64,000 bases of DNA from Piromyces finnis finn (Eukaryota; Fungi; Neocallimastigomycota): the NCBI GenBank assembly GCA_002104945.1, contig MCFH01000066.1, forward strand, positions 124,001 through 188,000, written 5' to 3'. The notes under the pieces were generated by a model. The model saw nothing but the letters and a program-made list of their open reading frames with translations. It was not told the origin of the DNA and did no database searches. A program made the translations under genes and the position numbers. Each line of letters opens with the position of its first letter. Positions within the stretch are counted from its first letter, which is position 1. Shown one piece after another: positions 13,426-62,007 of this stretch.

Positions 13426-13442
13426 TGGTGGAGAATCCGGGC
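13426..13442 (+). promoter_or_regulatory. tRNA-type PBS TGGTGGAGAATCCGGGC (probably tRNA-Ala)
   Basis: TGG start, 6 nt after the LTR; the TGGTGGAG prefix fits a tRNA-Ala 3' end (..CUCCACCA). The tRNA identity was not checked. Confidence 0.7.
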
Positions 13443-20466: not shown

Positions 20467-20483
20467 TATACGATTTTCCAACT
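20467..20483 (+). promoter_or_regulatory. PBS of element D, TATACGATTTTCCAACT
   Basis: Directly after GTTACA; contains the same 11-mer as the element A PBS. Confidence 0.7.
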
Positions 20484-34514: not shown

Positions 34515-35775
34515 TGTAAAATATTGTATTAATAGAACAATGTATTAATACGTATTTAAAATAATGTATAATGTATTAAATTAATGTACCGTAAATTTTA
34601 TTCTTTAATTACAAAAATTTATATCACAATACATTAACATAAATTTATGTAAAATTTAATTTTAGGATAAGATAAAGTTTTTGATGATAAAATAAAATTT
34701 TAAATTAAATAAATTTTAACCAATAAATATTTTAGATAATAAAAAAAATATTTTTATAAACTAAGCCTCAAAATTAGAAATAAATAAATTGAATATATGT
34801 TTGAAATATAATCAACCATATAGTAAATAAATCAAAACTTTATTTTAAGTTTAGAAAATTCTTTAGTAAATAAATTGAATTTAAATAGTTTAATACAAAT
34901 AATTTCTTTTAATAAATGTATAAATGTAAACAATGTAAAATTATAATATTAAAACATGTATATTAGAATTTATTCAATTTATTTAAAAAGTATAAATAAA
35001 GAAAATTTTTCAACTATTGAAACGATAGTTGGAAAATCGTATAGGTTAATTTTGTTTAGATAAATTAACATTAGTTTATAATTAGTTTATAGTTTAGATT
35101 AATAATTTTAGTTTTAAATAAATATAAATTGATTACATAGTGAGGGCTCTGGTAAAATATCCTTCACGGTAAAGTAATCAACGGTTATTTAGTTAGTATA
35201 GTTTTAAAAATAAATAAATAAATAAATAAAAATTATTATTAAAAATAATTAGTTTAATTGTTTAGTGTTGTATACAAACCTGAACTTTAGAATATTTTAC
35301 AATTTTCCAACTTGTTAGAATAGGAAGTTCACCTTTGTATACGAATAATAATAGAAAATAATATTATAAAAAAAAATTAATTATAGTGAGAATTTAATAA
35401 TAGAATTAAATTCGGGGATTATATAAAAAATATTAATATTAAAAAAGAAAAAAAAAAATTTTTTTTTGTTAGAAATTAATTTTAGTTAATTTCGGGGTAT
35501 TTTAAAATTATTTGGTATAGAATAATTTGTTGTTAAAATAGTTTAATAGTTAATAATCAATAAATAGTAATAATAAAGATATATTAGTTTGGTTAATAAC
35601 TAGTTGTTAGTTTAGTAGTAGTAAATAATAAAAAGGTTAGTATAGTATAATAATAAGGTTGTTAAATTATTTATTTAATATAAGAATAAAATAATTAGGA
35701 ATAGTCAAGTTGAATAGTATAAATAATTGGGATATTAAATATTGGTTGACTATTTGTTTTTTATTAAGTAGTAAT

Positions 35776-38700
35776 ATGAATACTAGATATAGAATGTTAG
35801 ACAACCGTGACGATGGAATAGCTGGAGTCAGTGACGCAGGCTCTGAGGCGAGTTCCATGATGGATATTGAGGATGAGACTGGTAAAAGCGTTAACACCAG
35901 GGGAAAACTCATCCCAAAACCTCCAAGATTTTCGGGAAAAAGAAGTGAACTTCTTTACTTCCTGGCAAGATTGGAGAAATACTTTAAATATAACTTGGAA
36001 GAAGATGCTACCGACGCCTACAAGCTGGATATCTTGGGATGCTACCTGGAAGGAACCGCCGCCGAATGGTTTGCCGACTTAGAAAGAGAAGAAAGCCCCC
36101 TGTTGAACTCTTACGAAGATTTTATTGAGGCAATGAAGGCTCGCTACAAGACTTGCAACAGAGCCGATGTAGCTAACAGTCGGTTGGTGAAGATAAAAGC
36201 AGGACAATTCAGGAACGTAATGGACTACTGTGAAGCTTTTGAGAAGATGGCCAGGGATTCGACATTTAATGATGAAGCTAAGATCTACTTCTTTATGGAA
36301 GGACTACCAACATCCGTCAAGGACAAAGCAAGGCTACTATATCCAAAAATTAGAAAACTTACCGAATTGATCAATGTGGTTGCCGCTAATGTCGAAGTTG
36401 AATGGAAAATTTATGGAAAAGATCTCATGGAGGTTGACGGAAAGAAAATTAGAAGATATAATAGACACTTAGGAACTAACAGATATGCTTCTTATGGAAC
36501 CAAGTATAATAACTATGTGGATCAAGAAGACTACCAAAATTCGACCAAACCAAGAAAATGCTTTTTCTGCAAAAGAACAGGACACTTGAAGAAAGATTGT
36601 CCTCAACTTAAGGACAAAATAATAAATCGACCAAAAGCATTTATGGCTACTACCGCTGGAAGAAGGATGTTGAATGTTTATGACATCGTGCTACAAGTCA
36701 ATAATGGTGCTTATCTTAAGGCTCTTGTGGATTCTGGTTCGGACTTGGACTTTTTGGATTGGAAGGCCGTTGATAAGTACAAGATTCCATTCCAAAGAAT
36801 GTTTAAGGATAAATATGTTGAAGGTATAGGTGGTAATGGATTTTTGAAGTATGAAACAATTCCTTTGATAATGAATATCAAGAATCATAAGGAATCCATT
36901 CAATTCTACCTTACCGATCTTCCTTCTGGTATTTCTGTTATTTTGGGCAAGAATTGGTTAAGAAAACATGATCCTACAATTAGCTTCAAGGATCAAACTC
37001 TAGAATTTAAGTCCAAATTCTGTTCTTTAAATTGCTGTGCTACTCCAGAAGAAATGGAAAAAAGAAGCAAAGAAGAAGAATTGTCTAAGGAAGAAGAAAG
37101 AAGAAAAGAGAAGGAACTAGTACAGGAAATACTCAATAATTATAAAAATAGTTTAAAAATTAGAGATAGTGAAATTAAGAACAAAGAAAATATAAAAATT
37201 ATAGATAAAAATAAGAATTCATGTATTAAAAAGAAATGTAGTAAAAACTTAAAATTAAATAAAAAGAATGTTCAAAAGTATATTGTATGTAGTGTTATTT
37301 CAAATGAAGGAAATAAAGGTGAAGATGTTGAAGAAAGTGTTGTAGAAATTCCTGATGTATATAAGGAATTTGAAAGTGTATTTGATGAAGTTGAGTGTAA
37401 TGAACTACCTCCACATCGAATATACGATTGTAAAATAAGATTGAAAGATAAAGATAACTTATTTTATGGTCCGTTATACCCTTTGACAGAAGAAGAAAGG
37501 AATACGTTAAAGGAGTATATTTCTGAAAATTTAGAAAAAGGATTTATTAGACCGTCTACTTCACCTGCCGGAGCACCTGTATTGTTCGTTAGGAAAAAGG
37601 ATGGGACTTTAAGATTGTGTGTTGACTACCGAAGACTCAATGAAAACACAATCAGAGATTCATATCCGTTGCCTCTCATATCAGAATTATTCGATAGATT
37701 AAGGGAAGCAAAAGTCTTTACTAAACTTGATCTCAAGTCTGCTTATAATCTAGTTCGAATAAATGAGGGTGATGAATATAAAACTGCATTTAGGACAAGA
37801 TTTGGTCACTTTGAATATCTTGTCATGCCGTTTGGATTGAAAAACGCTCCTGCAACTTTCCAACATTTTATCAATGATGTTCTCGGGGAATACTTGGATG
37901 AATTCGCTTTTTCTTATATTGATAATATTCTTATCTATTCGAAAAACTTAGAAGAACATCGAAAGCACGTAAAGAAAGTTCTTCAAAGATTAAAAGAAAA
38001 TGGCTTATATGCAAAACTTAGTAAATGCGAATTTGAAACTTCAGAAACTACTTTCTTAGGGCATGTTATCTCAGATAAAGGAATCTCTATGGATCCAAAG
38101 AAGGTTAAAGCTATTATGGAATGGCCTGTACCAACATCTGTTAAAGAAGTGCAATCATTTATCGGATTATGTAATTATTATAGAAGATTTATTCCAAACT
38201 TTGCTGGTATTGCTAAACCGTTACATAATCTAACAAAGAAAGATGTTAAATTTCATTGGTCAGAAGAATGTAATGAAGCTTTTTGTACTTTAAAGAAATT
38301 CTTTACCGAAGAACCAATTTTAATTCATGCTGATCCTGAATTACCTTTTGTGGTTGAGACAGATGCAAGTAATTTTGCAATTGGTGCTGTATTGTCTCAA
38401 AGGTTACCGAATAATAATGAACTTCATCCAATTTGTTATTATTCAAGGGGATTGACTAAATCGGAAAAGAATTATCCTATTTATGATAAGGAACTTTTGG
38501 CTGTTATTGAAGCTTTGAAACAATGGAGACACTACTTAGAAGGAGCCAAGCATCAATTTATGATCTATACGGATCATAAAAATCTTACCTTTCCTAGAAA
38601 GCCTGAACTATTGTCGCAAAGACAAATTCGCTGGAATTTGTTTTTGACCCGTTATGATTTCAAAATACAATATAGACCGGGTAAAGAAGGTGGAAAACCT

Positions 38701-41700
38701 GATGCTTTTTCAAGACGTCCTGATTATGAAGAAGATAAAAGTAATAAAGAAAACGAAGAAGCCTATTCTTGCTTGACAGTTAAAGAAATCGAAGATACTT
38801 TATGTCTTGTGTCTATTCAAGGGAATCTCAAAGAAGATTTAATTAAAGAAATTAAAGAAGATGAAGAAATTAAGGAGTTAATAAATATTCTACAAGGAAA
38901 ATCTACCGCAAGTAAGAAGTATAAGAAGTTAATGAAGAATTTTAAGTTAAGCGAAGAAGGAATTCTTTTGTATAAAAGTTTAATTTATGTACCAAAGAAA
39001 ATGAGAGATATAATAATCTCAATGCATCATGACAATCCAATTCATGGTCATTTTGGTATTATTAAAACAAAAGAATTAATTACAAGAAACTGTAAAGATA
39101 TAAAGTATATCTTTAAATTATTTAATAATTAATTAATAATTATTGAATAATAATTTTGATATTTTAATGAAAAAATTGTTTATAAAATTTATTTATTGTA
39201 TAAATTTTATGGAATAATTAAATAAATATTAATTTTAAAATATCAAAGTTAGAAATGAAATTTGGATAAATATTTAAATTAATGGATAATTAAATTTAAA
39301 TATTTTAAATATTCAAATTAAATCTTAAAAAGTTTTTATTTAATTAAAATTAGTTTAATAACTTTAGCGTAGTTTTAAATTAGCATTTTTAATTATAAAT
39401 ATATAATAAATAGTATTATTAATATTTAATTAATATATAGGTAATACATGGACTGTATTCAATTTGCAGTTTACTCAAATTGAATCAAAAGTGTATTTAA
39501 TTAGTTTTAGTTTAGTTTTATTATTTTATTATTTAATTAAATTAGTATTAAATTAGTTTTGTTTATTTTATATTGAATATATGTATAATTAAATAGAATA
39601 GTATATTAAAATATAATTTACAAAAAATATAAATACATGTAAATTTTCTTAATTAAAACGATGTAATTGTTATTGACTATTATTTAGTTAATAACTAAAT
39701 AAAATTAATAAAAGAGATATTTTTTTAAATATAATTTATTTTCTTGTTTTTTCTTTATTTTGTGTTGTTGTTTTATTGTAAAAAATTTTATAATCTGTTT
39801 TACATTTATAAAACTTTTACAATAACAATTACCTTTATTCTAATAAAACACGTTATAAATTTTTTTAATAAAATATATTTAATAAAATTTTTTTTACTAC
39901 CGCGTTTTAGGGACTCTCTACCTTGCTTTGAAATTTGCTACCGTGTTTAGAAACTAACTACCGCGTTTTAGGGACTCTCTACCTTACTTTGAAATTTGCT
40001 ACCGTGTTTAGAAACTAACTACCGCGTTTTAGGGACTCTCTACCTTACTTTGAAATTTGCTACCGCGTAATAAAGGATTATCTACCGCGTTTTGGTATTG
40101 CTACCGTGTCATTTAGAACGACTACTTTGCTTTAGAGATATCTACCGCGTCCATCATTGTACTTGTATATATTGTGGATCAACTTTATTTAATCTTCCAC
40201 CAACATCTACTATTGTACTGTATTTAATTTTGTTACTATATTTTTAAGAGCTCGTCTAACACCGTTTGATAGGATAGAGTTACGACGACATCTTAATTAA
40301 AATATTGTAAAAAATTAAATAAGTAAATATTAAACATACTGGAAGAAATAAACCAACTTTTATCCAACCTCCACTTAAACGGAAATATGGACCGTCAAGG
40401 GGCGTCTTTGAGGATAGTTAATGATCCTCCAACTTTCTCAGGAAGAAGACAAGAACTAGATGGGTTCTTGACCAGGGTTGAACTAGCCATTGAAGCCAAC
40501 CCTGATAGATTCGCTAATGATGAAGCGAGAGTTCGCTTCTTAATATCTTACTTTGTTAACAGACCTTTAGAATGGGCCGCTCGTTTACGACAGAACAACG
40601 ACGCCATTCTAAGAAACTATGATCAATTTATTGCTGCCCTTCGTACCAATTTCGGGGATCCCAATAATGACACAATTGTTGCAAATGGAAGACTTTGCAA
40701 CATAAAACAAAGAAAGTTTGGCAAAGTGTTTGAATATATTAATGAATTTCAACGCGTTAGCCAAAACTCTAATTTCAATGAAGCAGCGAAGATATATATG
40801 TTCACAAAGGGCCTACATCCAAAAATGCGTGAACATTTAGCAATAGTCAACCCAAATCCTACTCAGCTAGAGCGTCTCTACTCTGATGTCCTTAGCATAG
40901 AAAATCTTACTAAAAGAAATGACATCAGCGAATATTATATGACACACCAAGATAGAAGAAATTATAATCGTGACGATCCAATGGATGTTGACCTATATAG
41001 GATTAGCAAGGGTCAACGAAACGTAAATTACTTCCCATCTCACAGAAGTAATTACGTTGAACCTTCTACTACTAGATCGGATTTAAAGAAAAAAGGGGTT
41101 TGTTTTTCTTGTGGGAAGTCTGGACACATGCAGTTCAATTGTCCAAACAGGAAAAAGCCTAAGAGTGTTAAGATTATTAAAAGGACTATCTCCGAAGAAG
41201 AAGCCAGTTCTTCAACCCCTTCAGTCAAAAGAATTAGACCAACCAAAGATGTTACTGAGAATGATTCAAAATTATATAAAATACACAAAAGTGAAAAGAA
41301 GAACATCATCGATTTTTATATAAAAACAAACGATATGGAAGAAGTGAAAGTCAAAGTCCTTATTGATTCCGGCTCTGATTTAAATTTTATTCATCCTGAA
41401 TTTGCGAGAATTAATAACATTAAGCTTTACAATATCAGGAATCCATTTAAGGTTTCTGGTCTTGGTCAAGGTAATTCCACTGTTAGAAAAGAATCCGAAA
41501 AATGTATTCTCCGTTTAAGGAACCATTACGAAGTAATTCAACTGTACTCGTTAAGGATTCCCGAAGTCGATGTTATTCTTGGAGTACCTTGGATTGAGAA
41601 ACATTGTCCAGTTTATTATCATGATTCCTCAAAAATTGCCTTTAGCTCAGGATACTGTGCTCGACACTGTAATGTAGGCAAAAGGAGAAATAAGGGTACA

Positions 41701-44700
41701 ACCAATATGGATAAGAAATCGATGCCATCATCAAGAAAAGGGAAAGAAGCTGCCTTGGATAACGAAAATGAACAATCCTCTTGCATTGACCGTGGTTTTT
41801 CCGACTATGACGAATCCTTTTGTTGTGACTCTAGTGATGACGAAGAAACTGTTAATATCAGGGGCCGTAGAACCTCCGTTAAAACCATTAGTAACTTAGA
41901 TAGTTGTAATAAAATTAAATTTAGTGATAGTTTAAATAGCAATAATAATAATAATAATAATAATTGTAATTTTAAATGTACATGTAATAATATTAATTGT
42001 ATTGATGATAATTTAAATAAAGATAATAATTCGGTCACTGGACCAAAACAATACTCATTTTCAAAAGAAGTGATTAATAATAACAATTTTTGTGTATTAA
42101 ATTCCGTTAGTAACTGTAATGATTTATCTTGTAATATTATTAATAAATGTAAAACTGAAAATAATAATTTAAATAAAGATAAAAAATCTGTTGAAATCCC
42201 AAATCAATATTTATTATTTAAAGAGGTTTTTAATGAAAAGAATTGTAATATTTTACCCCCACATCGTGAATACGATTGTGAAATCAGATTAAAGGATAAT
42301 TCTAACTTGTTTTATGGTCCTCTTTATCCTTTAACTGAGGCAGAGAGAGATGAATTAAAATGTTATATTAAAGAAAATTTGGAAAAAGGTTTCATTAGGA
42401 AATCTACATCTCCTGCCGGAGCACCAGTTTTATTTGTCAAAAAGAAAGATGGGTCATTAAGACTATGCGTTGATTATAGGAAACTTAATGATATGACCAT
42501 TAGAAATTCATATCCTCTTCCATTAATTGGTGACTTATTGGATAGAGTGAAGGGTGCAAAGTACTTTACTAAATTGGACTTAAAGTCTGCTTATAATTTA
42601 GTAAGAATCAAAGAGGGTGATGAATACAAAACTGCCTTTAGAACAAGATATGGGCATTTTGAATATCTCGTCATGCCTTTTGGTTTAAAGAATGCACCAG
42701 CTACTTTCCAACATTTCATAAATGATGTCCTTAGTGATTATTTGGATGATTTTGCTATATCATATATTGATGATATTCTAATATACTCAAATAGTCTAGA
42801 AGAGCATCATGAACATGTTAAAAAAGTATTGGAAAAATTATTAGAAAATAATTTATATGTAAAGTTAGAGAAGTGTGAGTTTGATGTTTCAGAAACCACT
42901 TTTCTTGGTTATGTATTATCCAAAGATGGTTTGAAAATGGATAGAGATAAAGTTAAAGCTATCCTCGACTGGCCTGTTCCTACAAATGTTAAAGAAGTCC
43001 AATCTTTTATTGGATTATGCAATTATTATAGAATTTTTATTAAAGACTTTGCAAAAATCGCAAGTCCTTTACATAAACTTACTAGGAAAAATGTTCCTTT
43101 TAATTGGGCTTCTGAGTGTCAAAATGCATTTGTTATACTTAAAAGGCTTTTACTTCTGCTCCTATTTTAATGAACCCTGATAGCAACAAACCTTTTATTG
43201 TTGAGACTGACGCTAGTTTGAAGGGAAGTTGCACCCTATTGCTTTTATTTCATCTAGTTTAACCAAGTCTCAAAGAAATTATCAAATTTATGATAAAGAG
43301 TTGCTCGCTATCAAAGTGGCTCTCGAAGAATGGAGACACTATCTGGAAGGTGCAAAGCATCAGTTCGTCATTTATACTGATCATAAGAATTTAACTTTCC
43401 CAAGAAAGCCTGAAATGCTCTCACAAAGACAGATAAGATGGTATGAATTCTTATCTAGATTTGATTTTAAGTTAATATATAGGGCTGGAAAAAAGTGTGG
43501 CAAACCTGATTTGTTATCCAGACGTAGTGATCACATTGAATGTAGTAATTTTAGTTGTAATTTTATTTCATGTAATGTAATTAATACTTTTAATAAAGAT
43601 GATTCTTTAATCAATTCTATTTTATGTTCTTTAAAAAATGATGATTTATATAATAAAGTTTGTGTATTTTTAAATGAAAAAAATTCTTTGTCCCCTCCGA
43701 TTAGGAATATTAATAAAGTTAAAATCAATAAAGAAGGATTTTTACTTTACGGTAATTTAATTTATGTTCCTTCTTCATTAAGAACTAGGGTCTTAGAATT
43801 ACATCATGATTCTATTTCTGCTGGTCACTTTGGTGTTAATAAAACTATTGAATTAATTAGTAGAAATTTTTGGTGGCCAAAATTTAGTTATGATGTTAAA
43901 AAATTTATAAAGTCTTGTGAAACTTGTTGTAAAGCTAAAGTTCCAAGACATAAACCATATGGTTTGCTTTCTCCTCTTTCCACGCCTAATAGAGCTTGGT
44001 CGGAATTGTCAATGAATTTTATTGTCGAGCTTCCAAAATCCAAAGACATGACCACCATTATGGTTGTAGTTGATAGGTTAACAAAAATGGCTCATTTTAT
44101 TCCTTTAAGATGTCTGCCTACTGCTTCTATAGCAGCTGATGTTTTTGTTAACAATATCTTTAAATTACATGGTTTTCCTGATTCTATCATTTCTGATCGA
44201 GGTACTCAATTTACTTCAGACTTTTGGAATCGCTTATGTAATTTGTTAAATATTAAACTTGCTTTTTCTACTGCAAACCATCCTGAAACTGATGGACAAA
44301 CGGAGAGGGTGAACGGGATATTGGAACAATATCTCCGTTGTTTTATTAACGAAAAACAGAATAACTGGGTTGATTTGTTACCTTTTGCTGAATTTGCTTA
44401 TAACAATACTTTACAGCAATCAATCAATCAATCTCCGTTTTTCGCTAATTATGGGTTCAATCCAAAATTCAATCCTGAAATTCCTTCAGCGAATAGACCA
44501 AATAGAGCTGAACAAAGAATTTTGGATATTAATGAAAACATTAAATTTTTGAAAGAAAATCTTGATCAAGCAAAAGAAACCTACAAAAAGTATGCTGATC
44601 AAAAGAGAATGGAATCCCCAAGTTTCGAAGTTGGTAAAAAAGTTTGGTTATTAAAAGGTATTAATCCTTCAAACAAAAATGTTAAAAGAAAACTTGCTGA

Positions 44701-47102
44701 TCAAATGCTCGGACCTTTTGAAATAATCAAGAAGGTAAGTCCTTTAGCATTTGAATTAAAGTTGCCAAATAATTTACGTTGCCACCCTGTTTTTCATGTC
44801 TCGTTATTAGAACCTTATAACGAAAATGAATTTATAAATAGATCAGTAATAAATAAAAGAAAAAATATTAAGTTAACTACTGATACTATTGATAGGATTC
44901 CTGATAAGATTATTCAAGAAAGAAATTATCATGGAAAGAAATCTTTCTTGATGACATGGAAAAATCTTGACGAAAATACTTGGATCCCGGAAGATCAAAT
45001 TTCAGATGTACAATTGATCCAAGAATTTTATAGGAAAAATAAAAAGTCTAGAAAAGAAAGTCAAGATCAAGTTTATACAAGGAATAACAATGGTATGATC
45101 AGACATAGATATCAACCATTTGTAATTGATATTCCTTCAAAGAAATAATCTCGCAGGAGCTCGACTTAAAGGGCGAGATTGTAAAGATATAAAGTATATC
45201 TTTAAATTATTTAATAATTAATTAATAATTATTGAATAATAATTTTGATATTTTAATGAAAAAATTGTTTATAAAATTTATTGTATAAATTTTATGGAAT
45301 AATTAAATAAATATTAATTTTAAAATATCAAAGTTACAAATGAAATTTGGATAAATATTTAAATTAATGGATAATTAAATTTAAATATTTTAAATATTCA
45401 AATTAAATCTTAAAAAGTTTTTATTTAATTAAAATTAGTTTAATAACTTTAGCGTAGTTTTAAATTAGCATTTTTAATTATAAATATATAATAAATAGTA
45501 TTATTAATATTTAATTAATATATAGGTAATACATGGACTGTATTCAATTTGCAGTTTACTCAAATTGAATCAAAAGTGTATTTAATTAGTTTTAGTTTAG
45601 TTTTATTATTTTATTATTTAATTAAATTAGTATTAAATTAGTTTTGTTTATTTTATATTGAATATATGTATAATTAAATAGAATAGTATATTAAAATATA
45701 ATTTACAAAAAATATAAATACATGTAAATTTTCTTAATTAAAACGATGTAATTGTTATTGACTATTATTTAGTTAATAACTAAATAAAATTAATAAAAGA
45801 GATATTTTTTTAAATATAATTTATTTTCTTGTTTTTTCTTTATTTTGTGTTGTTGTTTTATTGTAAAAAATTTTATAATCTGTTTTACATTTATAAAACT
45901 TTTACAGAAACTTTGTTTGGATAAACATGACTCAAGATATAGTTAAGTTTATTGCTTCTTGTAAAGTTTGTGGAGCTGCTAAGGTTGATCGTCATAGACC
46001 TTATGGACTTTTACAGCCGCTACCAACTCCGGAAAGACCGTGGTCTTCTGTTTCTATGGATTTTATAACTGATTTGCCAAAGTCAAAGGAAAAAACAGTT
46101 ATAATGATTGTTGTAGATAGATTAACGAAGATGGCTCATTTTATTCCGTTTAGGATGATTCCTACTGCCCAAATTGCCGCTGATGTTTTCTTAAGAGAAG
46201 TTTTTCGTTTACACGGTCTACCTGATGAAATAATATCGGATCGAGGAACCCAATTTACTTCAGAATTTTGGCAAAGATTATGCACTTTGTTGAACATTAA
46301 GCACAATATTTCGAGTGCTCACCATCCTCAAACAGACGGGCAGACTGAACGTGTAAATAGTATATTAGAACAATTTCTTAGATGTTACATTAACAAAAGA
46401 AAAGATAACTGGATGAATCTTTTGCCTTATGCCGAATTTGCGTATAATAATACACTTCAGCAATCTATAAATCAAACTCCATTCTTTGCAAATTATGGGC
46501 AAAATCCAAGATTTAATACCGATATTCCTGCTGATAGTGACAACAGAAGAGCTAACAGGCACGCCTCTCAGATGCAAGATAATATTAAATTTTTAAAGAA
46601 GAACTTAGAAAAAGCCAAGGAAAGATATAAGAAATACGCCGATTGTATTAGACTTATTGGACCTAAGTTAAAGGTTGGTGACTTAGTTTGGTTAAAGCGT
46701 CCTGATTTACTTCCGAAAGGGCCTCCAAAATTAACAAATAAGAAACTTGGACCATTTAAGATCATTGAAAAAACAGGACCTGTTTCTTATAAATTGGAAC
46801 TACCAGAAAGTTTAAGATGTCATCCCGTTTTTCACATTTCGAACTTAGAACCTTATGTTGAAAGAGAAGTTGAAGTGAATGAATCAACTTCTAGAATTCC
46901 AAACATTGCTACTGATTCTACTGAAGGAAGAATTCCATTGAAGATTGTTAGTGAAAAAGTTGTTAATGGAACTAAGTACTACTTTATGGTTTGGAAAAGT
47001 TTATTACCTTCAGAAAGTACATGGCTTAGAGAAGATGAAATCGAAGATTATCAAATGATCCAGGAATATCTTAAACATAAGTCGCTCAGGGGCTCGACTT
47101 AA
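35776..47102 (+). CDS. pol: Element A single Gag-Pol ORF (35776-39090 joined to 45912-47102) with C-terminal chromodomain; RT motif reads YIDN
   Basis: CFFCKRTGHLKKDC, LVDSGS, ETDAS, HDNPIHGH..ITRN|FVWINM..CKVC, SMDF..SDRG..QTER, IVSEKVVNGTKYYFMVWK..STW; in frame after removing element B and one TSD copy. Confidence 0.93.
39896..40150 (+). repeat. Leader tandem repeat: 61-bp unit x ~2.8, built from ~20-bp CTAC(C) subunits
   Basis: Units start at 39896, 39957 and 40018; CTAC(C) recurs 13 times up to 40142. Confidence 0.9.
40387..45148 (+). pseudogene. pol: Element B Gag-Pol, broken in RNase H (frameshift at ~43143 and a ~12-codon deletion at ~43218); degenerate chromodomain-like tail
   Basis: CFSCGKSGHMQFNC, LIDSGS, YIDDIL, ETDAS|EGKLHP, integrase SMNF (Asp to Asn), IIQERNYHGKKSFLMTWK. 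Confidence 0.92.
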
Positions 47103-47865
47103 GAAGAGGGGCATGTAAAATATTGTATTAATAGAATGTATTAATACGTATTTAAAATAATGTATAATGTATTAAATTAATGTACCGTAAATTTTATTCT
47201 TTAATTACAAAAATTTATATCACAATACATTAACATAAATTTATGTAAAATTTAATTTTAGGATAAGATAAAGTTTTTGATGATAAAATAAAATTTTAAA
47301 TTAAATAAATTTTAACCAATAAATATTTTAGATAATAAAAAAAATATTTTTATAAACTAAGCCTCAAAATTAGAAATAAATAAATTGAATATATGTTTGA
47401 AATATAATCAACCATATAGTAAATAAATCAAAACTTTATTTTAAGTTTAGAAAATTCTTTAGTAAATAAATTGAATTTAAATAGTTTAATACAAATAATT
47501 TCTTTTAATAAATGTATAAATGTAAACAATGTAAAATTATAATATTAAAACATGTATATTAGAATTTATTCAATTTATTTAAAAAGTATAAATAAAGAAA
47601 ATTTTTCAACTATTGAAACGATAGTTGGAAAATCGTATAGTATAGTTTATATAGTTTAGTTTAAGTTAGTTTTTAATAATAAATATTGATTACCTAGTGA
47701 GGGCTCTGGTAAAATATCCTTCACGGTAAAGTAATCAACGGTTGTTTTAGTTTAGTTATTTTAAAATAATTTAATAAATAAAATATAAAAAAATAAAAAT
47801 AATTTAAAGTGTAGTTTAGAATATTGAGTGTATACAAACCTGAACTTAGTTTAGAATATTTTACA

Positions 47866-48672
47866 GTCCTCCTCCAGGATTCGGATACCAGACGAATCTT
47901 TGGGTTCATTTTATGTTTTATTAAATTAATTTTTTAGGCTATATAACTACTATATACTTAAACTATACTAATTGAATTACAATAAAAATAATTTTTTATA
48001 TTATACATTTGATATTAAATACATGCTTAAAGTAAATTTAAAATTTAAGAAAATAAATTTTTTTTTTTTTTAAGAATAAAATTAAAAATAAAATTAAAAT
48101 AAATTAAAATAAAGTTTCCGTTGAAATCATTTCTTTTCGTTGAATTCCTTAAGTAGCTCTGGACAATTCAAATTATTTTCTGGCTCCCAAGATGCTTCAG
48201 ATATCGGATATCCTTTCCATTTAATTAGGTATTGGACTTTACCATAATATCTTCTTTTGTCCAATATCTCCTCAATTTCAAATTCTTCATTATTATCCAC
48301 AATAACTGGTGGAGGTTGCGGTTGCTTTCTTTTGAACTTATCTTCATGGTAGGGTTCCAATTCTGAAACGTGGATGACTGGATGAATACGAATTTCTTTT
48401 GGTAACTCCAATTTGAAAGAAACTGGTGATATTTTTTCAATTATTTTGTACGGACCAAGTTTTCTAGGTTTTAACTTCTTATTACCATTCCGCATTATTA
48501 GAGAACTGTTAATCCAGACCTTATCATTTACCTTGAGTTCAGGAGCTTTACTTCTGTGTTTGTTTGCAAATTTTTCTTGTTGATCAATAGATTTCTTTAA
48601 GTTATCTTTAAGAGTTTTAATTATTTCTTTGAAATTTCTTGTAAATTCATCCGCAATTGGTACATCGGTGCG
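47866..48672 (-). mobile_element. pol: Element E 3' end: integrase C-terminus with canonical chromodomain (48672-48127), 3' UTR and PPT GGAGGAGG (47875-47868)
   Basis: KLKPRKLGPYKI..HPVIHVSELEP..EFEIEEILDKRRYYGKVQYLIKWKGYPISEASWEPENNLNCPELLKEF; the frame is open back to the X LTR at 48673. Confidence 0.93.
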
Positions 48673-49280
48673 TGTAAAGATATCAAACGCCTCAACTTGA
48701 TATCTTTAATGTAACTTAAGCCACAAGTATTATTGTTTAAGTTACACAAATTATATTCAGAAAAAGAAAATGAGACATAATTTATTTATTAATAATTAAA
48801 ATTTAAAACAAAATAAATTATTAATTTATTTTTAATGTTTAACAAGTAAATTAATATTCTCAATTTAAATCCCTAGTTTTAGTATTGTTTTTTTATAGAA
48901 ATAGATAAATAATAAATGATTAATATATCAATAATACATGGGCACATATTCAAATTAAATAGTACTTAATTTGAATTGCCAATTGTATTTTACTAAAAAT
49001 AGTTATAGTTTAAATATTTATTGATAATTAAGATTTTAGTGTAGATTTTAAATAATAATATATAAGAAATAAATAGTTATAATATAATATAATTGTACTT
49101 AGGAAAAATATAAATAGAAGATATTTTTCATCATTTTGATCGATGTAATTGTTATTAATAAAATTTCTATTATAATAAAAGATATTTTTAATAAAACAAT
49201 TTTTTATTTTATTTTTCAAATTTTTGTGTTATTGTAATAGAATAGATATCCTAATCTATTCTTTCTGTGTCACCATTACA
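48673..49280 (+). mobile_element. Family X LTR with non-matching flanks
   Basis: TGTAAAGATATC..CACCATTACA; flanks GTGCG / CACGT; left neighbour is E integrase, right neighbour is LINE RT. Confidence 0.92.
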
Positions 49281-51140
49281 CACGTATACCTAATTTATAT
49301 AACTTTGTAAGGATATTAAAAATAGGAACTGAGTCGTATGCTTTCTTAAGGTCAAGAAAAGCAACATAAGTGGCTTTTCCTTTAAATTTTCTTCTTTGAC
49401 AGATTTCTTTAATGGAAATAAATAAGCTAATGCATTCTTCTTTATTGCGAAAACCAAAATGCTCAGGTTTTATAAAATTATGAGAAAGAGCATACTTTGA
49501 AATTCTATTAGTTACAATTTTTGAAATGATTTTAAGACCTACATTGATGAGAGAAATACCACGATAATTATTACAGTCTGAAAGATCGCCTTTCTTTGGA
49601 ATAGAAACAATGGAAGCAGAGTTCCATTTCAAAGGAAAGGAACCATTCCAGATTTTGTTAAAAATTAATTTAAGACAATTTCCAGCAGACTTATGTTCTT
49701 TTTTTCCAGTTCTTCGCTACAAAAGAAAGCTTTGAAGAATTCAATTGGGATACCATCGGGACCTGGAGTCTTATTATTCTTCATTGACAGAACAGTATTT
49801 CTAATCTCCTCAATAGAGATGGGATCATTAATATTACATACTATTTGATTTATATGATTGAATTGGATGGCTCTTTCCCAGTAACCCCGATTTAAACTAT
49901 AATTTGTAACATCAGATGCAAGATTTTCATAATGTTCAGCCCAACGTTTTAATTGTTCTTGAGGAGTAAATAAATCCTTGCCATTCTTGTCCTTAAGAGT
50001 TGAAACATGAGAGGATAACTTGGTTTGGCAAGTTTTTTAAGGCCTTTCCAACCTTGTCTAAAGCTTATATCTATAGAATGTTTACCGATAGAAACAATAT
50101 TAGCTTTATAGAGATTGAATCTGAATTTACTCTTAACCTTTTTGATAGTATTACATAGATTTTGGTATATGGAGAACTGGTTAAGATAATTTTCCATGTC
50201 AGCACAATCTGAAATGGTTTTAATATTTTTGTAAGCCAGGTGTTTTTTATGTGATAAGTTTTTGATGTATTTAGGGCAATGGAATGCTGGACATTTTAAA
50301 TCTGCAGGCACAATGGCTTTTATTTCTTTACCTATAGTTTTGGAGGTATATCTAAAAATTTGGAAACCATATCGTCAGCCGATAGGCTATCGCAATTTGC
50401 TTCAAGCTCAGAAGCTAGAACAGCAAAGCGATTACTAGTAAGAATGTCAGAACACTTTGTATTACAGATATGACTTGACCATTTAAAGGTCTTATTAGGC
50501 TTTTTGAAACCATCAGAAGAGTCTTTTTTACAAGATACAAGGATCGGTTTGTGATCAGAAACATCGTGAAAAACTTCGCAAACTGAAGATTTGTTTATGT
50601 GTTCTGTCATAGCTTTGTTGTATATAATATGGTCAATGCATGAATATTTAGATCCTTTTTTCCAGGTAAAATTATTATCAGTTAACTCAGCCATAGTCCA
50701 ATCCGGGAAGTGTTGTGAAATATAAGATTTGATTTTAATAGCTGACATATTGAAGTCTCCTACAAGGATAGTTGGGTGGTTGAATTTGTAATGTGTTGTT
50801 AACCACTTATCAAGTTCATCAAAGGCAATTAATCTAGCATCCGGCCATCTAGTTTGCGGAAAGTAAATATTACCTATGGTACATCTCTGGTTCCAAAATG
50901 ACAGTATTGTAACTGAAATAATGTACTTATATAGAAGAGGTTCAGGAGTAAAGGAACAAGAATTATTAACACCAATGTAAAGTCCTCTCATACCTGGAAC
51001 TTTAGGATTAGCACGTCTATGTACTGGTTTATAGTTCGGTAGGCATGGGGAGGAAATTGCATTACCACAGAAGAATTGGCTGTTACCTACTTCTTGAAGG
51101 CAGATACATACAGGTTTGAAAACAGAGATGAAGTATAAAA
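49281..51140 (-). mobile_element. LINE remnant 2: APE-type endonuclease, linker and RT N-terminus
   Basis: ICLQEVG, GNIYFP, LVGDFNM, SCIDHIIY, VSDHKPI, then GPDGIP and YRGISL..LDLKKAYDSV; frameshifted. Confidence 0.92.
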
Positions 51141-51242
51141 TAATATGTTATAAAAGTTGTTAAATCAACTACTATCTAAAATAAGTTGAAGGTGTAAGGG
51201 ATATATGATATAACAACTAACACTCAAATTATCGACTCTATT

Positions 51243-52275: not shown

Positions 52276-52800
52276 TTATTTTATTGTAGCAAAATTAAAA
52301 CTTTTAGGAGAAAACTTTTCCGATTTAAGCAAAATTTCGGTTTTATTAAATCCATATTTTTTACAAGCAAAAATAAATTTTGAATTTATCCAATTTTTAA
52401 TAATATTAATGTTATTATAGAATTCTGGTATTGAAGATAATTGTATATTACCTTTATTATTAATTCTACCAGGAAGCTTTCCGTCTTCGCTTAATGTGTA
52501 ATCCTCTTCAATATATGGAGTTAAAAATGTTTGCAATTCTTGGATATGAGATTCAAAAATATTTGGATTAAATGCAGAAATTAATACTTCTTTTAAAATA
52601 TTTCGAAATTGTTTAGTATTTTTATAAACTAATTTATCAAGAATTGGTATATTATATGCCCAATCAGCAAATGAGAACGCTACTCTATCTTTTTTTTTAT
52701 ATAATCTAGTTCCATCTTGATTCCATCTTCCTTTTTTTTTATGTATCCATTTTCCAATGCCATTATTAAATGTATAATCATAATCATAATTAATTATTAT
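52276..52800 (-). pseudogene. CotH-kinase-family C-terminal fragment or exon
   Basis: DYDYTFNNG...ILKEVLISAFNPNIFESHIQELQTFLTPYIEED resembles CotH C-termini as I recall them; the upstream part is replaced by Copia sequence; possible acceptor TTATAG near 52802. Confidence 0.5.
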
Positions 52801-54939
52801 GTCTATAATTAGGAAAATCAAAAACATATTTACTTCTATAGAAAAACAAGATATTAAAATCATGAGTGAAGTTGAGAAGGTAAAAATTATTTATCATGCT
52901 CTTCCAAAATGCTTACAAGAAAGAATGACTATCCACAAAAATTAAATATGATGAATTCATTGAAGAAGCTATTGACAAACATTTAATGATCGCATACCTC
53001 AAGGATAAATCAACTATTAGTAAAATTGACAATGTCAAATTGTCAAGTGATGATCAAATGGATATAGATTTTATCTCAAAAGAAAAAATTTTCAATAAAA
53101 CAAAAACAATTCCAAATAACAAATACAAAGGAAAATCTACTAAAAATTATTGCTACATTTGTGAAGCGTATAATCATAGCTTAGATCAATGTAAATTTAA
53201 TATAAAAACAAAAATAGAGATGGAAATAAAAATAGAAATACATCAGAGAAACATTCAAGAAATCGAAAACAAAAGGGTAGAAATTTTAAAAATAATAATT
53301 TTAGATCAAAATCTTCAAGAAATTTTTAAAATATTGAATATTATGAAGAAGATAATAAATATGATAATGTAAGTTTCTATGAATTAAGGAAAATGTATGA
53401 TAAAGACTTTTCTAGTTTCGAAAAAATAAATAATCACAATAAAAAGGAAGAATTTACGAATGATAATAATACTCGAAAATTTCAATTAAATAACTTTGAA
53501 TACGATGCATTAAAAATAAAACTGTATGGACTTTTGACACTGGCGTATCGGAACATATAACTTGCAACAAAGATATTCTTGTTAATTTTATCGAAAAAGA
53601 AATCAAAATGAAGTGTGCAAATAATACATTATGTAAATTTTCAGGCTACGGTTCTTATATTGGAACAATCAATAATAAAAGAATTGTCTTAAATAATGTC
53701 TTTTACTCTAATCAAATCAAAAAGAATTTTTTAAGTGGAATTAAATTGGCTAAAAATGGAATTATAACCAATATTGCTGAAAAAGGTAATAACGTCTATT
53801 TAAGTTTAAAAATAAAAAACAAAAATAAAAATAATAACAAATTTATTGGAAGATTTAAAGCGAATGAAAACAATATTATACAAATTGTGTCAAAGAATAT
53901 AAATACTCCAAAATTATGTATTTCAAGTATGCAACAAAATAATTCATCAAAACTAAATGATGAAAGTAAGTTATTATAGGTTAGGACGTTTTTATCATGA
54001 TAACCTAGAAAAATATTTGGAAATACATAATATTAAACCTATTCAATGTTTACTGCAATATTGCTAAAATAACTAGGAAACCACATAATGGTAATACTTC
54101 AAAAGCTACCCAAATATTAGAAGTTATTCATTCAGATGTAATGGGCCCTATTGAAGAATCAATTACTGGAAAGAAATATATTCTTACTTTTATTGATGAA
54201 TTTTCAAGGAAAAGCTGGATTTTCTTATTAAGAGACAAAAAAGAAATAACAAAAACAACAATTAATTTTCTCACATATTTAAATAATCACTTTGGAAAAA
54301 ACATTAAAGTTTTCAGAAAAGATCAAGGAACTGAATATAACAATGATAAAATCAAAAATTATTGCGTAAAGCGTAAAGGAAGGTATTAATAAAGTTTTTT
54401 CTCCACCTCATAACTCAGAAAATAATGGAATTGCCGAACGATTTAACAGAACTTTAGTTAACTGTGGGAAAACTCTACTAAAATGAGCTAGAATTAATAC
54501 AAATTTCTGGGACTATGCTACTAGATATGCAAACATTTTATACTACATGGCTCCGCATAAAGGTATAAAAAACAAAATTCTAGATGAGGTATTTTATAAT
54601 AAAAAAGTAATTTTAAAATATATTAAAGTGTTCGGATATTTAGCTTATTATAAAGATATTAATCAAAATAAATCAAAATTTCAAAGTAATTCAAAAATGG
54701 GTATTTTTCTTGGCTATAGTTTTGAGTCAAATTGTTATATAATTATGGATTATTATAATTATAATATTCGACTTATTAAAGAAGCAATTTTTGATGAATT
54801 CACACCTGCTGGCTTAGCTAAAGATCAATTTATATTTTCAAGTAATTCAAACAGCAAAATTAACAATAAAATAAACACAAAACTTTTTAATGTTGATAAC
54901 TATATTTTAACATTCCCAGCAAACATTTTCCCAGAACTA

Positions 54940-55164
54940 AATAGTAATAGTAATAGTAATAGTAATAGTAATAGTAATAGTAATAGTAATAGTAATAGTA
55001 ATAGTAATAGTAATAGTAATAGTAATAGTAATAGTAATAGTAATAGTAATAGTAATAGTAATAGTAATAGTAATAGTAATAGTAATAGTAATAGTAATAG
55101 TAATAGTAATAGTAATAGTAATAGTAATAGTAATAGTAATAGTAATAGTAATAGTAATAGTAAT
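54940..55164. repeat. (AATAGT)n perfect hexamer, ~37 units, in frame as poly(Asn-Ser)
   Basis: Direct reading. Confidence 0.95.
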
Positions 55165-56596
55165 AAAATATCATCAAATTTTTATTCAATATAATAATGA
55201 TTTTTCTGAAAATGAAGATACTTATTATAGACATATAAATATTGATTTAAATAATTCAATTAATAATAATCAATCTCTTAATAATAATCTAAATATCTCT
55301 AATAATAATGCTAATGAAACTAATACTATCAATAATCGAATTTATGATAATAACTAATATTAATATGCATAATAATGATAATGAACACAAGAAAGTGCAT
55401 TTATATAATAATGATTAACAATTAAAAATAACAATTTAGAAACACATATAAATACAACTAATATTAACAATGAAAATGAATATATACATATTAACGAAGA
55501 ATCGATTAATTTAAATTTAGAATCTACTAATTATAATACTTTAAATATTACAAATAATAATAATAATGATAATATAAATAATAAAAAACATCACTCTCAA
55601 TTAGATAAAAATATAAGTTAAAATCAGGCTCAAAAAGAAAATGTTCTTTTGATGAAGACTTAAAATACTCTAAAAGAATTGATTCAAAATGTAATAATGA
55701 TATTATCCTTTCTACTAAAAGAAAACATTTTAATCCGGACGATAATACAATTTTTAATAAAAAGATTAAAAATAATTTATACAATGTCAACAATTTACCA
55801 CTTAAAAGATACAACAGTGATCATTCATCTACTCACTCTAAAAGAATAGATCTTAGTAAAAATACAAATAGTGATATTAATAACTACGTTATATTCAATA
55901 TTATTACTGATACATCATTTTCATATAAACAAGCAATTAACTGTAAAGACAAGGATAAATGGATAGATGCTATTCAAAATGAACTTAATTTATATTCAAA
56001 TAAGATTATGACTTTAATAAAAAAACTACCACCTGGAAAAACTCCTATTACAACCAAATGAGTTTTTACAATTAAACACGATGCTCATGGTAATATTGAT
56101 ATATATAAGGCAAGACTGGTTGCTCGCGGTTTTACTCAAACTCAAGGAATGGATTATGATTTAACCTTTCCCCCTACTCTTAATTTAGACTGTTTCAAAC
56201 TAATTTTAGCATTATCTTCTAAACTTAAGTGGAATATTTTTCAATTAGATATTAAGGCAGCATATCTTAATGCTTCCCTAGATTATGACATTTATACTGT
56301 TATTCCTCCTGGTGATCCATACCATGGAAATGGTTACTGGAAACTTAATAAAGCCTTGTATGACTTAAAACAATCTGGCCGCCAATGGAACAATAATTTT
56401 ATTTCTTTCATTAAAAACAACAAATTCATCCAATTGAGTTATGAATCTTGCATTTTTATGAAAAGAAAGGGGGAAAATATTACATATATTATCGGACTCT
56501 ACGTAGACGATTTAATTATTTCAGGATTAAATTATGAAATTAAATGGATTATAAATAGAATTAAAAATAAGTTAAAAATTTCAAAATGTGAACCAA

Positions 56597-57213
56597 TGTA
56601 ATGATGACACAGAAAGAATAGATTAGGATATCTATTCTATTACAATAACACTAAATTTAAAATAAAAAATAAAAATTATTTTATTAGAAATATCTTTTAT
56701 TATAATAGAAATTTTATTAATAACAATTACATCGATAAAATGATAAAAAATATCTTCTATTTATATTTTTCCTAATTACATTTATATTATATTATAACTA
56801 TTTATTTGAAATATATTATTATTTAAAACCTATGCTAAAATCTTAACTATTAATAAAATATTTAAATTATAACTATTTTAGTAAAATTAAATAGGCAATT
56901 CAAGTTAAGTACTATTCAATTTGAATATGTGCCCATGCATTATTTATATATTAATCATTTATTATTTATATACTATTTATCTATTTCTATCAGAAAACAA
57001 TACTAAAACTAAGAAATTAAATTGGGAAATTTAATTTATTTGTAAAACATTAAAATTAAATTAATAATTTATTTTGTTTCAAACTTTAATTATTACTAAA
57101 TAAATTATGTTTTATTTTCTTTTTCTGTAATATAATTTATGTAACTTAAACAATAATACTTGTGGCTTAAGTTACATTAAAGATATCAAGCTGAGGCGTT
57201 TGATATCTTTACA
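56597..57213 (-). mobile_element. Solo LTR, family X, in Copia RT
   Basis: TSD ACCAA at 56592-56596 and 57214-57218; RT continues ..KCEP|INYILGI. Confidence 0.93.
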
Positions 57214-57552
57214 ACCAATAAACTATATATTAGGAATAAAAGTTGAAGAACATAATAAAAAATATTCTATTTCACAAGAACAATTTATAAATAATATGCT
57301 ACAAAAGTTTAACATTACAAATACTAGAAAAGCCAACACTCCTTGCACTGGTAAAAATAAAACTCCATTTGATAGAACGACATACAAAAGTGCAATCGGC
57401 TCATTAATTTATATAGCAAAATGCATAAGACCAGATATATCTTTTTCAGTAGGAAAAGTAGCTAGAAATTCAGAAAATCCTATGGTTAGTGACTGGAAAA
57501 AAGTAATGAACATTTTTAAATATTTAAATAAAACAAAAAGCTATAAAATCAT

Positions 57553-58333
57553 TGTAAAATATTGTATTAATAGAATAAGAATAATGTATTTAATAAGTAT
57601 TTAAAATAATGTATAATGTATTAAATTAATGTACCGTAAATTTTCATAAAATTTATATCACAATACATTAACATAAATTTATGTAAAATTTAGCTTATTG
57701 ATAAGATAAAGTTTTTGATGATAAAATAAAATTTTAAATTAAATAATTTTTAACCAATAAATATTTTAGATAATAAAAAAATTTTTTTATAAACTAAGCC
57801 TCAAAATTAGAAATAAATAAATTGAATATATGTTTGAAATATAATCAACCATATAGTAAATAAATCAAAACTTTATTTTAAGTTTAGAAAATTCTTTAGT
57901 AAATAAATTGAATTTAAATAGTTTAATACAAATAATTTCTTTTAATAAATGTATAAATGTAAACAATGTAAAATTATAATATTAAAACATGCATATTAGA
58001 ATTTATTCAATTTAATTAAAAAGTATAAATAAAGAAAATTTTTCAACTATTGAAACGATAGTTGGAAAATCGTATAGTATAGTTTATATAGTTTAGTTTA
58101 AGATAGTTTTTAATAATAAATATTGATTACCTAGTGAGGGCTCTGGTAAAATATCCTTCACGGTAAAGTAATCAACGGTTGTTTTTAGAATAGATTTTTT
58201 TTAATAAAATTATAAATAAAATAATATTAAAATTAATTAGTTTACTTGTTTTAATTTAGTTTAGTGTACGTATACAAACCTGAACTAGATAGTTTATTTT
58301 ACACCTCCTCGAGGATTCGGATACCAGACGAAT
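57553..58333 (-). mobile_element. A-like (E-type) LTR 57553-58303 plus the E-type PPT motif 58304-58333
   Basis: Homologous to the A LTR along its length; followed by the same 30-mer as at 47868-47897 (29/30); no TSD. Confidence 0.8.
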
Positions 58334-58396
58334 GGAAAAGAACTAAACTAATTTATTAAATATTTAATCGAGTGAAAATTTTTTTTTTTTACATTA

Positions 58397-58844
58397 TGTA
58401 ATGTTGAACATAGAAAGAATAGATTAGGATATCTATTCTATTACAATAACACAAAAATTTGAAAAATAAAATAAAAAATTGTTTTATTAAAAAATTATCT
58501 TTTTTTATAATAGAATTTTAATAATAACAATTACATCGATAAAATGATGAAAAATATCTTCTATTTATATTTTTCCTAAATACATTTATATTATATTATA
58601 ACTATTTATTTCTTATATATTATTATTTAAAATCTACACTAAAATCTTAATTATTAATAAATATTTAAACTATAACTATTTTTAGTAAAATACAATTGGC
58701 AATTCAAATTAAGTACCATTTAATTTGAATATGTGCCCATGTATTATTGATATATTAATCATTTATTATTTATCTATTTCTATAAAAAAACAATACTAAA
58801 ACTAGGGATTTAAATTGAGAATATTAATTTAATTGTTAAACATT
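58397..58844 (-). mobile_element. Family X LTR, truncated by V copy 2
   Basis: TGTAATGTTGAACATAGAAAGAATAGATTAGG start; colinear with the other X copies up to ttgttaaacatt. Confidence 0.88.
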
Positions 58845-58859
58845 TGTAACGAATACTAG

Positions 58860-59357
58860 TGTAAAAGGTGTTTTTATAATATTAGTTAATAAGTTATATA
58901 ATTTAGTTAATTAAGTTAGTTATTACCTCTCTATACGAGTTAATAACTAAACAAAGTTTTATAAAAAATAATAAAAGAAATAAAATAAATATTATAACAC
59001 TAAAATAATTACAAACAAATGTATAAAGATTTGATGAAATAATGTTTACTTAAATAATTCTATATTAATTATATCTTTTATTTATTAATTATAATTATAT
59101 ACATTAATTATTATTATAGTTACTAATTTACTTTAATACTAACGCTAAAGTATTTAACATTAGTTTTAACTATACTATTTAACTATATTAGTTTATTTTA
59201 TTTACCACTTGATTGGGTAAAGCAAATAAACTTCCTATTTAATTAATAACCATTAATATATGGTTATACATATATTTGGCCAATAAATGGTGACCAGAAT
59301 ATATGGTTTCAATTGAAATATTTGTGGGCAAACTTATGGCCACAAATATTTCTTACA
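58860..59357. mobile_element. LTR family U, copy 1 (498 bp)
   Basis: TGTAAAAGG..TTCTTACA, flanked by ACTAG on both sides. Confidence 0.88.
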
Positions 59358-59362
59358 ACTAG

Positions 59363-59857
59363 TGTAAAAGGTTTTTATATTATTAGTTAATAAGTTACTA
59401 ATTAGTTAATTAAGTTAGTTATTACCTCTCTATACGAGTTAATAACTAAATAAAGTTTTATAAAAAATAATAAAAGAAAGAAAATAAATATTATAACACT
59501 AAAATAAATATAAACACTTATATAAATATTTTATGAAATAACTTTTACTTAAATAATTATATTTTAATTATATCTTTTATTTATTTATTATAATTATAAT
59601 ACATTAATTATTATTATAGCTATTAATTTACTTTAATACTAACGCTGAAGTATTTAACGTTAGTTTTGACTATACTATTTAACTATATGAGTTTATTTTC
59701 TTTACCACTTGATTGGGTAAAGCAAATAAACTTCCTATTTAATTAATAACCATTAATATATGGTTATACATATATTTGGCCAATAAATGGTGACCAGAAT
59801 ATATGGTTTCAATTGAAATATTTGTGGGCAAACTTATGGCCACAAATATTTCTTACA
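59363..59857. mobile_element. LTR family U, copy 2 (495 bp)
   Basis: Same termini and ACTAG flanks; many substitutions and small indels relative to copy 1 in the first two thirds. Confidence 0.88.
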
Positions 59858-61413: not shown

Positions 61414-62007
61414 TGTAATGGCGACACAGAAAGAATAGATTAGGATATCTATTCTATTACAATAACACAAAATTTAAAATAAAATAAAAAATTGTTTTAT
61501 TAAAAAATTATCTTTTATTATAATAGAAATTTATTAATAACAATTACATCGATCAAAATGATGAAAAATATCTTCTATTTATATTTTTCCTAAATACATT
61601 TATATTATATTATAACTATTTATTTCTTATATATTATTATTTAAAATCTACACTAAAATCTTAATTATTAATAAATATTTAAACTATAACTATTTTTAGT
61701 AAAATACAATTGGCAATTCAAATTAAGTACCATTCAATTTGAATATGTGCCCATGTATTATTTATATATTATTTATCTATTCTATGAAAAAACAATACTA
61801 AAACTAGGGATTTAAATTGAGAATTTTAATTTACTTGTTAAACATTAAAAATAAATTAATAATTTATTTTGTTTTAAACTTTAATTATTAATAAATAAAT
61901 TATGTCTCATTTTCTTTTTCTGAATATAATTTGTGTAACTTAAACAATAATACTTATGGCTTAAGTTACATTAAAGATATCAAGTTGAGGCGTTTGATAT
62001 CTTTACA
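61414..62007 (-). mobile_element. Solo LTR, family X
   Basis: TSD ATAAT at 61409-61413 and 62008-62012. Confidence 0.93.

Follow-up and report, generated by a model that had tools for sequence, protein, structure and literature searches.

The polarity of a long terminal repeat (LTR) is taken as fixed relative to the genes that it flanks. In the present study, we analysed 64,000 nt of DNA from the anaerobic gut fungus Piromyces finnis (assembly GCA_002104945.1, contig MCFH01000066.1, positions 124,001 to 188,000 of the forward strand), hereafter the window. A sequence-only reading had described one LTR in it (47114-47865) with a polypurine tract on both sides, apparently used in opposite orientations by two convergent chromovirus families, A on the + strand and E on the - strand. 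We found that this LTR is a hybrid of two LTR variants. On sequence grounds it belongs to family A, a Tf1-like chromovirus predicted to prime itself, and has A's polarity. We read the arrangement of one LTR with two polypurine tracts most readily as the outcome of an exchange between LTRs rather than as a shared bidirectional LTR. As the best explanation, the evidence points to a well-known process, ordinary rearrangement, and to families that are new within known groups. If true, a borrowed inverted LTR would change the annotation of LTR elements and the view of LTR exchange between families; LTR exchange in a dense transposon nest can mimic a shared LTR, which is a useful warning for annotation.

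Family A was recognized as a chromovirus by gag, protease, reverse transcriptase (RT), RNase H, integrase and a C-terminal chromodomain between two LTRs (Pfam; LTR pair). The left side of the disputed LTR was found as the sequence-only reading had placed it: the pol stop TAA (47100-47102) runs into the purine run AAGAAGAGGGG (47101-47111), followed by CA (47112-47113) and by the TG with which the LTR begins at 47114. A-type LTRs occur four times in the window (9348-10032, 34515-35301, 47114-47865 and 57553-58303), all on the + strand. An 11-nt complementarity between the primer-binding site (PBS) ATTTTCCAACT and AGTTGGAAAAT within the LTR is present in all copies and in an outside A relative. 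This relative, protein P0270 (68% identical over 96%; loci L018-L025), has in common with the A element of the window the block after the pol stop and the purine run. Its LTR begins TGTAAAATA and ends ..TTTTACA, as in the window copies, ATTTTCCAACT stands directly after the LTR, and the hairpin ends in the exact complement AGTTGGAAAAT. In addition, a further block in the last part of the LTR is conserved between the P0270 loci and the window copies, and the distance from the hairpin to the LTR end is ~260 nt in the outside relative L019 and 243-275 nt in the window. Since the block, the LTR tips, the PBS and the hairpin are common to the P0270 loci, the LTR is natively A's, with a polarity tied to A's predicted priming. 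The earlier description of the LTR as A's own and as inverted relative to E, at two loci, is thereby upheld.

Tf1 and Tj1 are self-priming elements, in which the PBS is complementary to a sequence inside their own LTR (PMC4600332). Family A resembles Tf1, Tf2 and Tj1 in its gag-pol with a Tf2-type SH3 domain and chromodomain, and it is like Tf1 and Tj1 in its 11-nt PBS, which lies directly after the LTR and is complementary to LTR-internal sequence (PMC4600332). It differs in its host, an anaerobic gut fungus, and in that its Tf1-type self-priming is predicted from complementarity. A 17-nt site, TATACGATTTTCCAACT at 20467-20483, soon after the LTR end ..ACGTTACA of another chromovirus of the window (gag 21510-22541), is complementary to AGTTGGAAAATCGTATA inside the family A LTR; one self-primer sequence would therefore be common to two families. 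At L018 4852-5252, in one outside A-relative contig, a new gag-like open reading frame (ORF) starts only ~400 nt past the pol stop; this gap is far below the length of an LTR plus leader, which suggests a rearranged or mis-assembled copy. At ~9100-9347, GC-richer sequence stands in for the first ~100 nt of the LTR copy 9348-10032; it is tRNA-like or SINE-like (short interspersed nuclear element) by eye, and ARAGORN and Rfam report nothing for it.

The hybrid structure of the disputed LTR became clear on comparison with the other copies, in which the flanking pieces of nested insertions were compared separately. Its left part matches the 5' LTR of its own element, A copy 2, and its right part is a variant, here called b, that is common to the copy 57553-58303 and unlike the variant a of its own 5' LTR (Table 1). 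Past 47640, one aligned stretch of 46 bases agrees at 36/46 positions with the partner 5' LTR and at 45/46 with the copy 57553-58303, and the partner 5' LTR has 39 extra columns that are absent from both other sequences. Informative sites place the switch between ~47578 and 47641; the switch is sharp, as is expected of an LTR-LTR exchange between variants. Variant b lacks a 34-nt segment of variant a; this segment is also missing in the outside A LTR, so variant b is not a degenerate form. An apparent mosaic of U3 variants across the four copies was discarded as an artefact of ungapped identities, since it vanishes in gapped alignment.

The target-site duplications (TSDs) give a second line of evidence for exchange. 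A copy 2 has no such duplication (flanks ATATC versus GTCCT), and neither has the copy 57553-58303, whereas ordinary insertions nearby have one: 5-bp duplications are present at the nested element C (GAAAC) and at two solo copies of LTR-Y, another LTR family of the window. Elements without a duplication are an accepted mark of unequal exchange between elements (PMC4668562). Known products of unequal LTR recombination are resembled here by the hybrid LTR with its sharp switch and by A copy 2, the copy 57553-58303 and the LTR-Y copy 48673-49280, all without duplication (PMC4668562). The difference is that one partner LTR adjoined the polypurine tract of an unrelated family, and this makes the product look like a shared LTR. 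With a hybrid LTR and no duplication at A, the two polypurine tracts can derive from two parent LTRs. The hybrid could also be an assembly join of two loci with a near-identical LTR stretch, as the switch falls in a stretch that is identical or nearly so in all four copies (~47578-47641), where an assembler could jump. However, a 64-kb contig across so many repeats implies long reads spanning a 750-bp LTR. Moreover, the copy 57553-58303 has a joint between E and the LTR independently, so that an error would remove only the two-tract picture. We consider such a join very unlikely.

The right side of the disputed LTR was also confirmed in its arrangement. The LTR ends ..TTTTACA at 47865, and in the minus-strand reading GGAGGAGG (47868-47875) is followed by 2 nt and then by TGTAAAATATT; the stop codon of the E chromodomain lies at 48127-48129. 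The E sequence at this locus is, however, a 181-codon C-terminal fragment only, in which Pfam detects SH3_Tf2-1 and Chromo. It is 84% identical to the outside protein P0163, the best value in the protein searches, and 83% to an Orpinomyces protein, its closest named relative; the other relatives come from metagenomes. Exact look-ups of proteins from the window gave no record. One of them is a complete gag-pol of 1396 amino acids, and from this relative and the window fragment, with SH3 domain and chromodomain, 3' untranslated region, polypurine tract and LTR, family E was classed as a chromovirus. Its integrase is clearly distinct from A's, as had been claimed, the C-termini being 35% identical. 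A second, more distant E-like integrase fragment (3726-5072, + strand; ~60-65% identical to P0163) has an LTR-Y copy within it and then breaks off at an LTR that is akin to the LTRs of the nested element C.

The 30-nt motif next to the LTR, part of the earlier description, proved to be a conserved 3' signature of family E. Four loci came from a metagenome scan for its 22-nt core, and protein-guided look-ups added more. At these outside loci the motif always lies 50-290 nt past the stop of an E-type chromodomain ORF, and this constant position in every outside case identifies it as E's 3' signature. For the same reason we ruled out an A-like family that would have the motif as its PBS or leader on the + strand. 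All the outside E 3' ends found agree in the first 21 nt without a difference, although the proteins attached to them share only 53-84% identity with the window fragment; the block stands at 47877-47897 (-) and 58313-58333 (-) in the window and at L003, L004, L005, L006, L008, L026, L029 and L033 outside it. Of the distinct ends, five have the purine run after the block, one has it in altered form and one lacks it. In one E lineage it is missing between the block and ..GGACCA TGTAAC.. (L033 3230-3262, L034 1809-1841), so the run that is read as E's polypurine tract is not universal in the family.

Outside the window, none of the readable E ends continues into an A-type LTR. All seven distinct ends that could be read onward run into ..GGACCA and then TGTAAC.., which we take as the start of E's own LTR; the L003 locus (tagaggaggaccatgtaacgaaag) is an example. 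An unrelated LTR on E elements, which the sequence-only reading had itself named as contrary to a shared LTR, is thus indicated at every readable end, all of them in other genomes. At L003 the E 5' LTR ends ..GTGTTACA. No LTR pair was found inside any outside contig, these being short-read assemblies, so that E's native LTR is known from two ends only. Comparison of the A LTR, in both orientations, with the outside sequences after the E signature gave only low-complexity noise (57-62% identity, both strands). The proposed ATTTT(T/C)CAACT-type PBS for E was absent from the E relatives, no self-priming complement was found for the E 5' PBS region of L003, and neither the E signature nor an A-LTR block was found in scans of viral and prokaryote genome collections. 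The E signature folds as a hairpin no better than shuffled sequence (z = +1.0).

Within the 21-nt block, TGGTATCCGAATCC resembles in form a primer-binding site of the tRNA type yet stands at the 3' end; neither a 5' partner nor a matching tRNA was found, and we regard it as a lead only. Part of the tRNA-binding site of Ty3 is located at the 3' end (PMC5371799), and the invariant E block with TGGTATCCGAATCC beside the polypurine tract recalls this bipartite arrangement. In Ty3, however, the 3' part lies in U3, whereas the E block lies upstream of the tract.

The same joint between an E tail and an A-type LTR occurs a second time in the window. The sequence-only reading had noted that the diverged LTR copy 57553-58303 is followed by the same motif and has no A sequence on its left; both points stood, since the motif is repeated at 58312-58333 (22/22 nt identical, 0 expected by chance) and the left flank is a copia-type RT. 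The 2-nt spacer, however, is not found there, as the purine run touches the LTR. The E tails of the window end 2 nt (47866) and 4 nt (58304) before the native ..CCA, and both meet the final base of the A-type LTR, with its terminal CA. The 11-bp terminal inverted repeat reported for the LTR was confirmed at 47114-47865, and that of the second copy has 9 bp. Between the two joint loci most of the LTR is 97-100% identical, but the last ~125 nt are only ~65% identical. Beyond the motif the loci are unalignable, as are E relatives of different lineages there. The left flanks of the four LTR copies are a LINE (long interspersed nuclear element), the copia RT, A pol with its purine tract, and the inserted GC-rich sequence. 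The same tail-to-LTR joint found twice is odd, and nothing shows E using the disputed LTR. It is of real interest that the tail of one family meets the LTR tip of another to the base, twice, and that the 21-nt signature is identical in every E 3' end found; either point may be a clue to targeting, or to a signal for replication, among retrotransposons of anaerobic gut fungi, which have been little studied.

The account that we favour, and hold tentatively, is that A-type elements inserted where E's polypurine tract meets E's own LTR and that LTR exchanges later produced the hybrid, without any use of the LTR by E. The left 527 nt of the disputed LTR would be the true 3' LTR of the young A copy 2, and the right 225 nt would come from another A-type LTR, of variant b, that already abutted the 3' end of the E fragment. 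The two LTRs, in the same orientation, would have been fused by homologous exchange (unequal crossing-over or gene conversion) with deletion of the intervening DNA, so that the A tract on the left and the E tract on the right would trace to two parent LTRs. Both earlier joints between E and the LTR, including that of 57553-58303, would be scars of A-type insertions, and later LTR-LTR exchanges would have removed the far side of each insertion. What the sequences show directly is the family assignment, the hybrid structure, the missing duplications and the E signature with its continuation in relatives; in what order the events took place, and that the joints began as insertions, we infer. At each joint the E tail meets precisely the CA tip of the A-type LTR, the expected product of joining by integrase. 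The offset of 2 nt between the joints in E is easier to reconcile with two separate events of joining than with the copying of one captured LTR. Furthermore, the LTR-Y copy 48673-49280, only 800 nt away and without a duplication, joins E to a LINE. It is a second product of exchange between elements, so that the same kind of event is seen again.

Several points weigh against this account. Two insertions in the same orientation within 2 nt need targeting, for which no basis was found. The reciprocal joint, in which the start of an A-type LTR follows the start of an E LTR with a 5-bp target repeat, is absent from the window, and no trace of an LTR native to E is present there either. To explain the copia sequence on the left of 57553-58303, another exchange is needed, and the account therefore needs more events than a captured LTR would. 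All copies of variant b adjoin the E motif and all those of variant a adjoin A's PBS; with n=2 each, this is not significant.

As to targeting, Tj1 is a self-priming relative with integration at a fixed site and in a fixed orientation upstream of RNA polymerase III genes (PMC4600332). If the insertions were independent, two joints within 2 nt and in a single orientation would be comparable with Ty3, Tj1 and DGLT-A (PMC4600332). The target here would differ in lying inside another retrotransposon, and no polymerase III-type sequence was confirmed nearby. Site-specific integration of that kind goes with a polymerase III gene at a fixed distance; ARAGORN and Rfam gave no tRNA beside the E signature in the relatives. 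A tRNA-like module at the start of the E LTR, considered as a polymerase III target, was rejected because it had no support from ARAGORN or Rfam, even at an E-value of 10.

The alternative proposed by the sequence-only reading is that a lineage of family E in this fungus replicates with an A-derived, inverted LTR. For two families, and read in either direction, this LTR would be promoter, R region and integrase substrate. Both E tails do meet the LTR where an LTR should begin after a polypurine tract, and its terminal inverted repeat (11 bp, 9 bp in the second copy) gives the same tip in either orientation, while E's native LTR also begins TGTAA. The copia left flank of 57553-58303 would then simply be the site of an E insertion, with fewer events, and the invariant 22-nt core of the motif beside an LTR end of ~65% identity might result from selection on a functional signal. 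In addition, the hairpin at 47602-47632 is nearly palindromic. On the other hand, the window holds no E copy with two inverted A-type LTRs and a target-site duplication, no E 5' end or leader, and no matching primer-binding site beside an A-type LTR. The readable outside E ends all lead to TGTAAC.., and between species the conservation of the R-U5 blocks and the self-primer follows A's orientation. Copying of one captured LTR does not predict joints that differ by 2 nt exactly at the junction. The loci are also unalignable beyond the motif, although the LTR is mostly 97-100% identical. Finally, the one LTR with two tracts is the hybrid. With the missing duplication of A added to this, a captured, shared and bidirectional LTR is unsupported, and we regard this alternative as unlikely.

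A single accidental joint of an A LTR and an E tail, spread by segmental duplication within the nest and followed by decay of the copies, would explain why variant b and the orientation are common to both joints, and the region is full of rearrangements. Such a history requires that 2 nt were lost right at the joint and that the second copy was broken precisely where the E motif begins on its upstream side. The motif, moreover, is unchanged over 22 nt beside an LTR end that is ~35% diverged. We regard this history as quite unlikely. The joints might also have formed during or just after reverse transcription, when two natural ends, the cleavage site of the E tract and the first base of A minus-strand DNA at the tip of the linear A DNA, would have been brought together by template jumping or end-joining, with later fixation in the genome. 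The position 47865/47866 is the expected end of the E plus-strand primer if CA precedes TG, as in A; a 2-nt scatter of such ends is plausible, and the minus-strand order of E tail, inverted LTR, A tract and A pol mirrors A minus-strand DNA. The E tail, however, is not complementary to A's PBS, A internal sequence is missing from the second copy, and a separate exchange would still be needed for the hybrid LTR. We know of no precedent for this process, and it appears the least probable of the explanations weighed here.

Table 1. Features of the window that bear on the disputed LTR and its surroundings
Feature	Position	Strand	Remarks
Family A copy 1: 5'-truncated 5' LTR (variant a) and PBS	9348-10043	+	LTR part 9348-10032
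Family A chromovirus, copy 2: LTR, PBS, gag-pol, polypurine tract, LTR, with one nested element	34515-47865	+	self-BLAST, alignment, Pfam
5' LTR of A copy 2	34515-35301	+	variant a at 3' end
PBS of A copy 2, ATTTTCCAACT	35302-35312	+	complementary to AGTTGGAAAAT within LTR
A gag-pol with chromodomain, single gene	35710-47102	+	split once by nested element; both pieces otherwise open
Nested chromovirus, family C, inside A gag-pol	39091-45906	+	LTRs 99.3% identical; 5-bp TSD GAAAC; Pfam
A polypurine tract and CA spacer	47101-47113	+	block also in outside A relative
Left part of disputed LTR	47114-47640	+	526/526 aligned bases as in partner 5' LTR; one 3-nt indel
Imperfect palindrome, hairpin -13.8 kcal/mol, ending in self-primer AGTTGGAAAAT	47602-47633	+	presumed R start in A's orientation
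Right part of disputed LTR, variant b	47641-47865	+	common to copy 57553-58303, unlike own 5' LTR
E 3' signature: 21-nt block (47877-47897), then purine run	47866-47897	-	adjoins LTR
3' untranslated region of E fragment	47898-48126	-	stop-signature gap matches E relatives
E integrase C-terminus (SH3) and chromodomain	48127-48672	-	181 codons, no internal stop; cut off upstream by LTR-Y
LTR-Y copy, 608 bp, between E fragment and LINE RT	48673-49280	-	no TSD
LINE fragment: endonuclease and beginning of RT	49281-51147	-	Pfam
Copia-type element, pol disrupted by several frame breaks and one solo LTR-Y	52929-57552	+	ended by LTR 57553
Solo LTR-Y within copia pol	56597-57213		TSD ACCAA
Second A-type LTR, variant b	57553-58303	+	no A internal sequence on either side; ~91% identical
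Second E 3' signature	58304-58333	-	no alignable E sequence beyond

The window as a whole, with a GC content of ~24%, is a retrotransposon nest of several Ty3/gypsy chromoviruses, a copia-type element, LINE fragments and solo LTRs. LTR-Y is a ~610-bp LTR family (TGTAATG..TCTTTACA), found as solo or partial copies only, at 3831-4811, 6438-7059, 48673-49280, 56597-57213, 58389-58844 and 61414-62007. A 5-bp duplication flanks two of the copies, and one copy is recombinant; two of the six sit in E-type integrase sequence, ~50 codons or less apart. The chromovirus with gag at 21510-22541 has its pol at 23924-26176, and its 5' LTR is split by a nested element at 12787-20438; the split LTR (12386-12786 / 20439-20465) gave 0 matches to the outside E-flanking sequences. 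Directly after a truncated LTR-Y, 58855-59862 consists of a ~500-bp unit in two tandem copies that are 94-97% identical. Among the transposons, ORFs like CotH kinase (52276-52863, - strand) and GDSL lipase (28181-28738, - strand) may be remnants of host genes.

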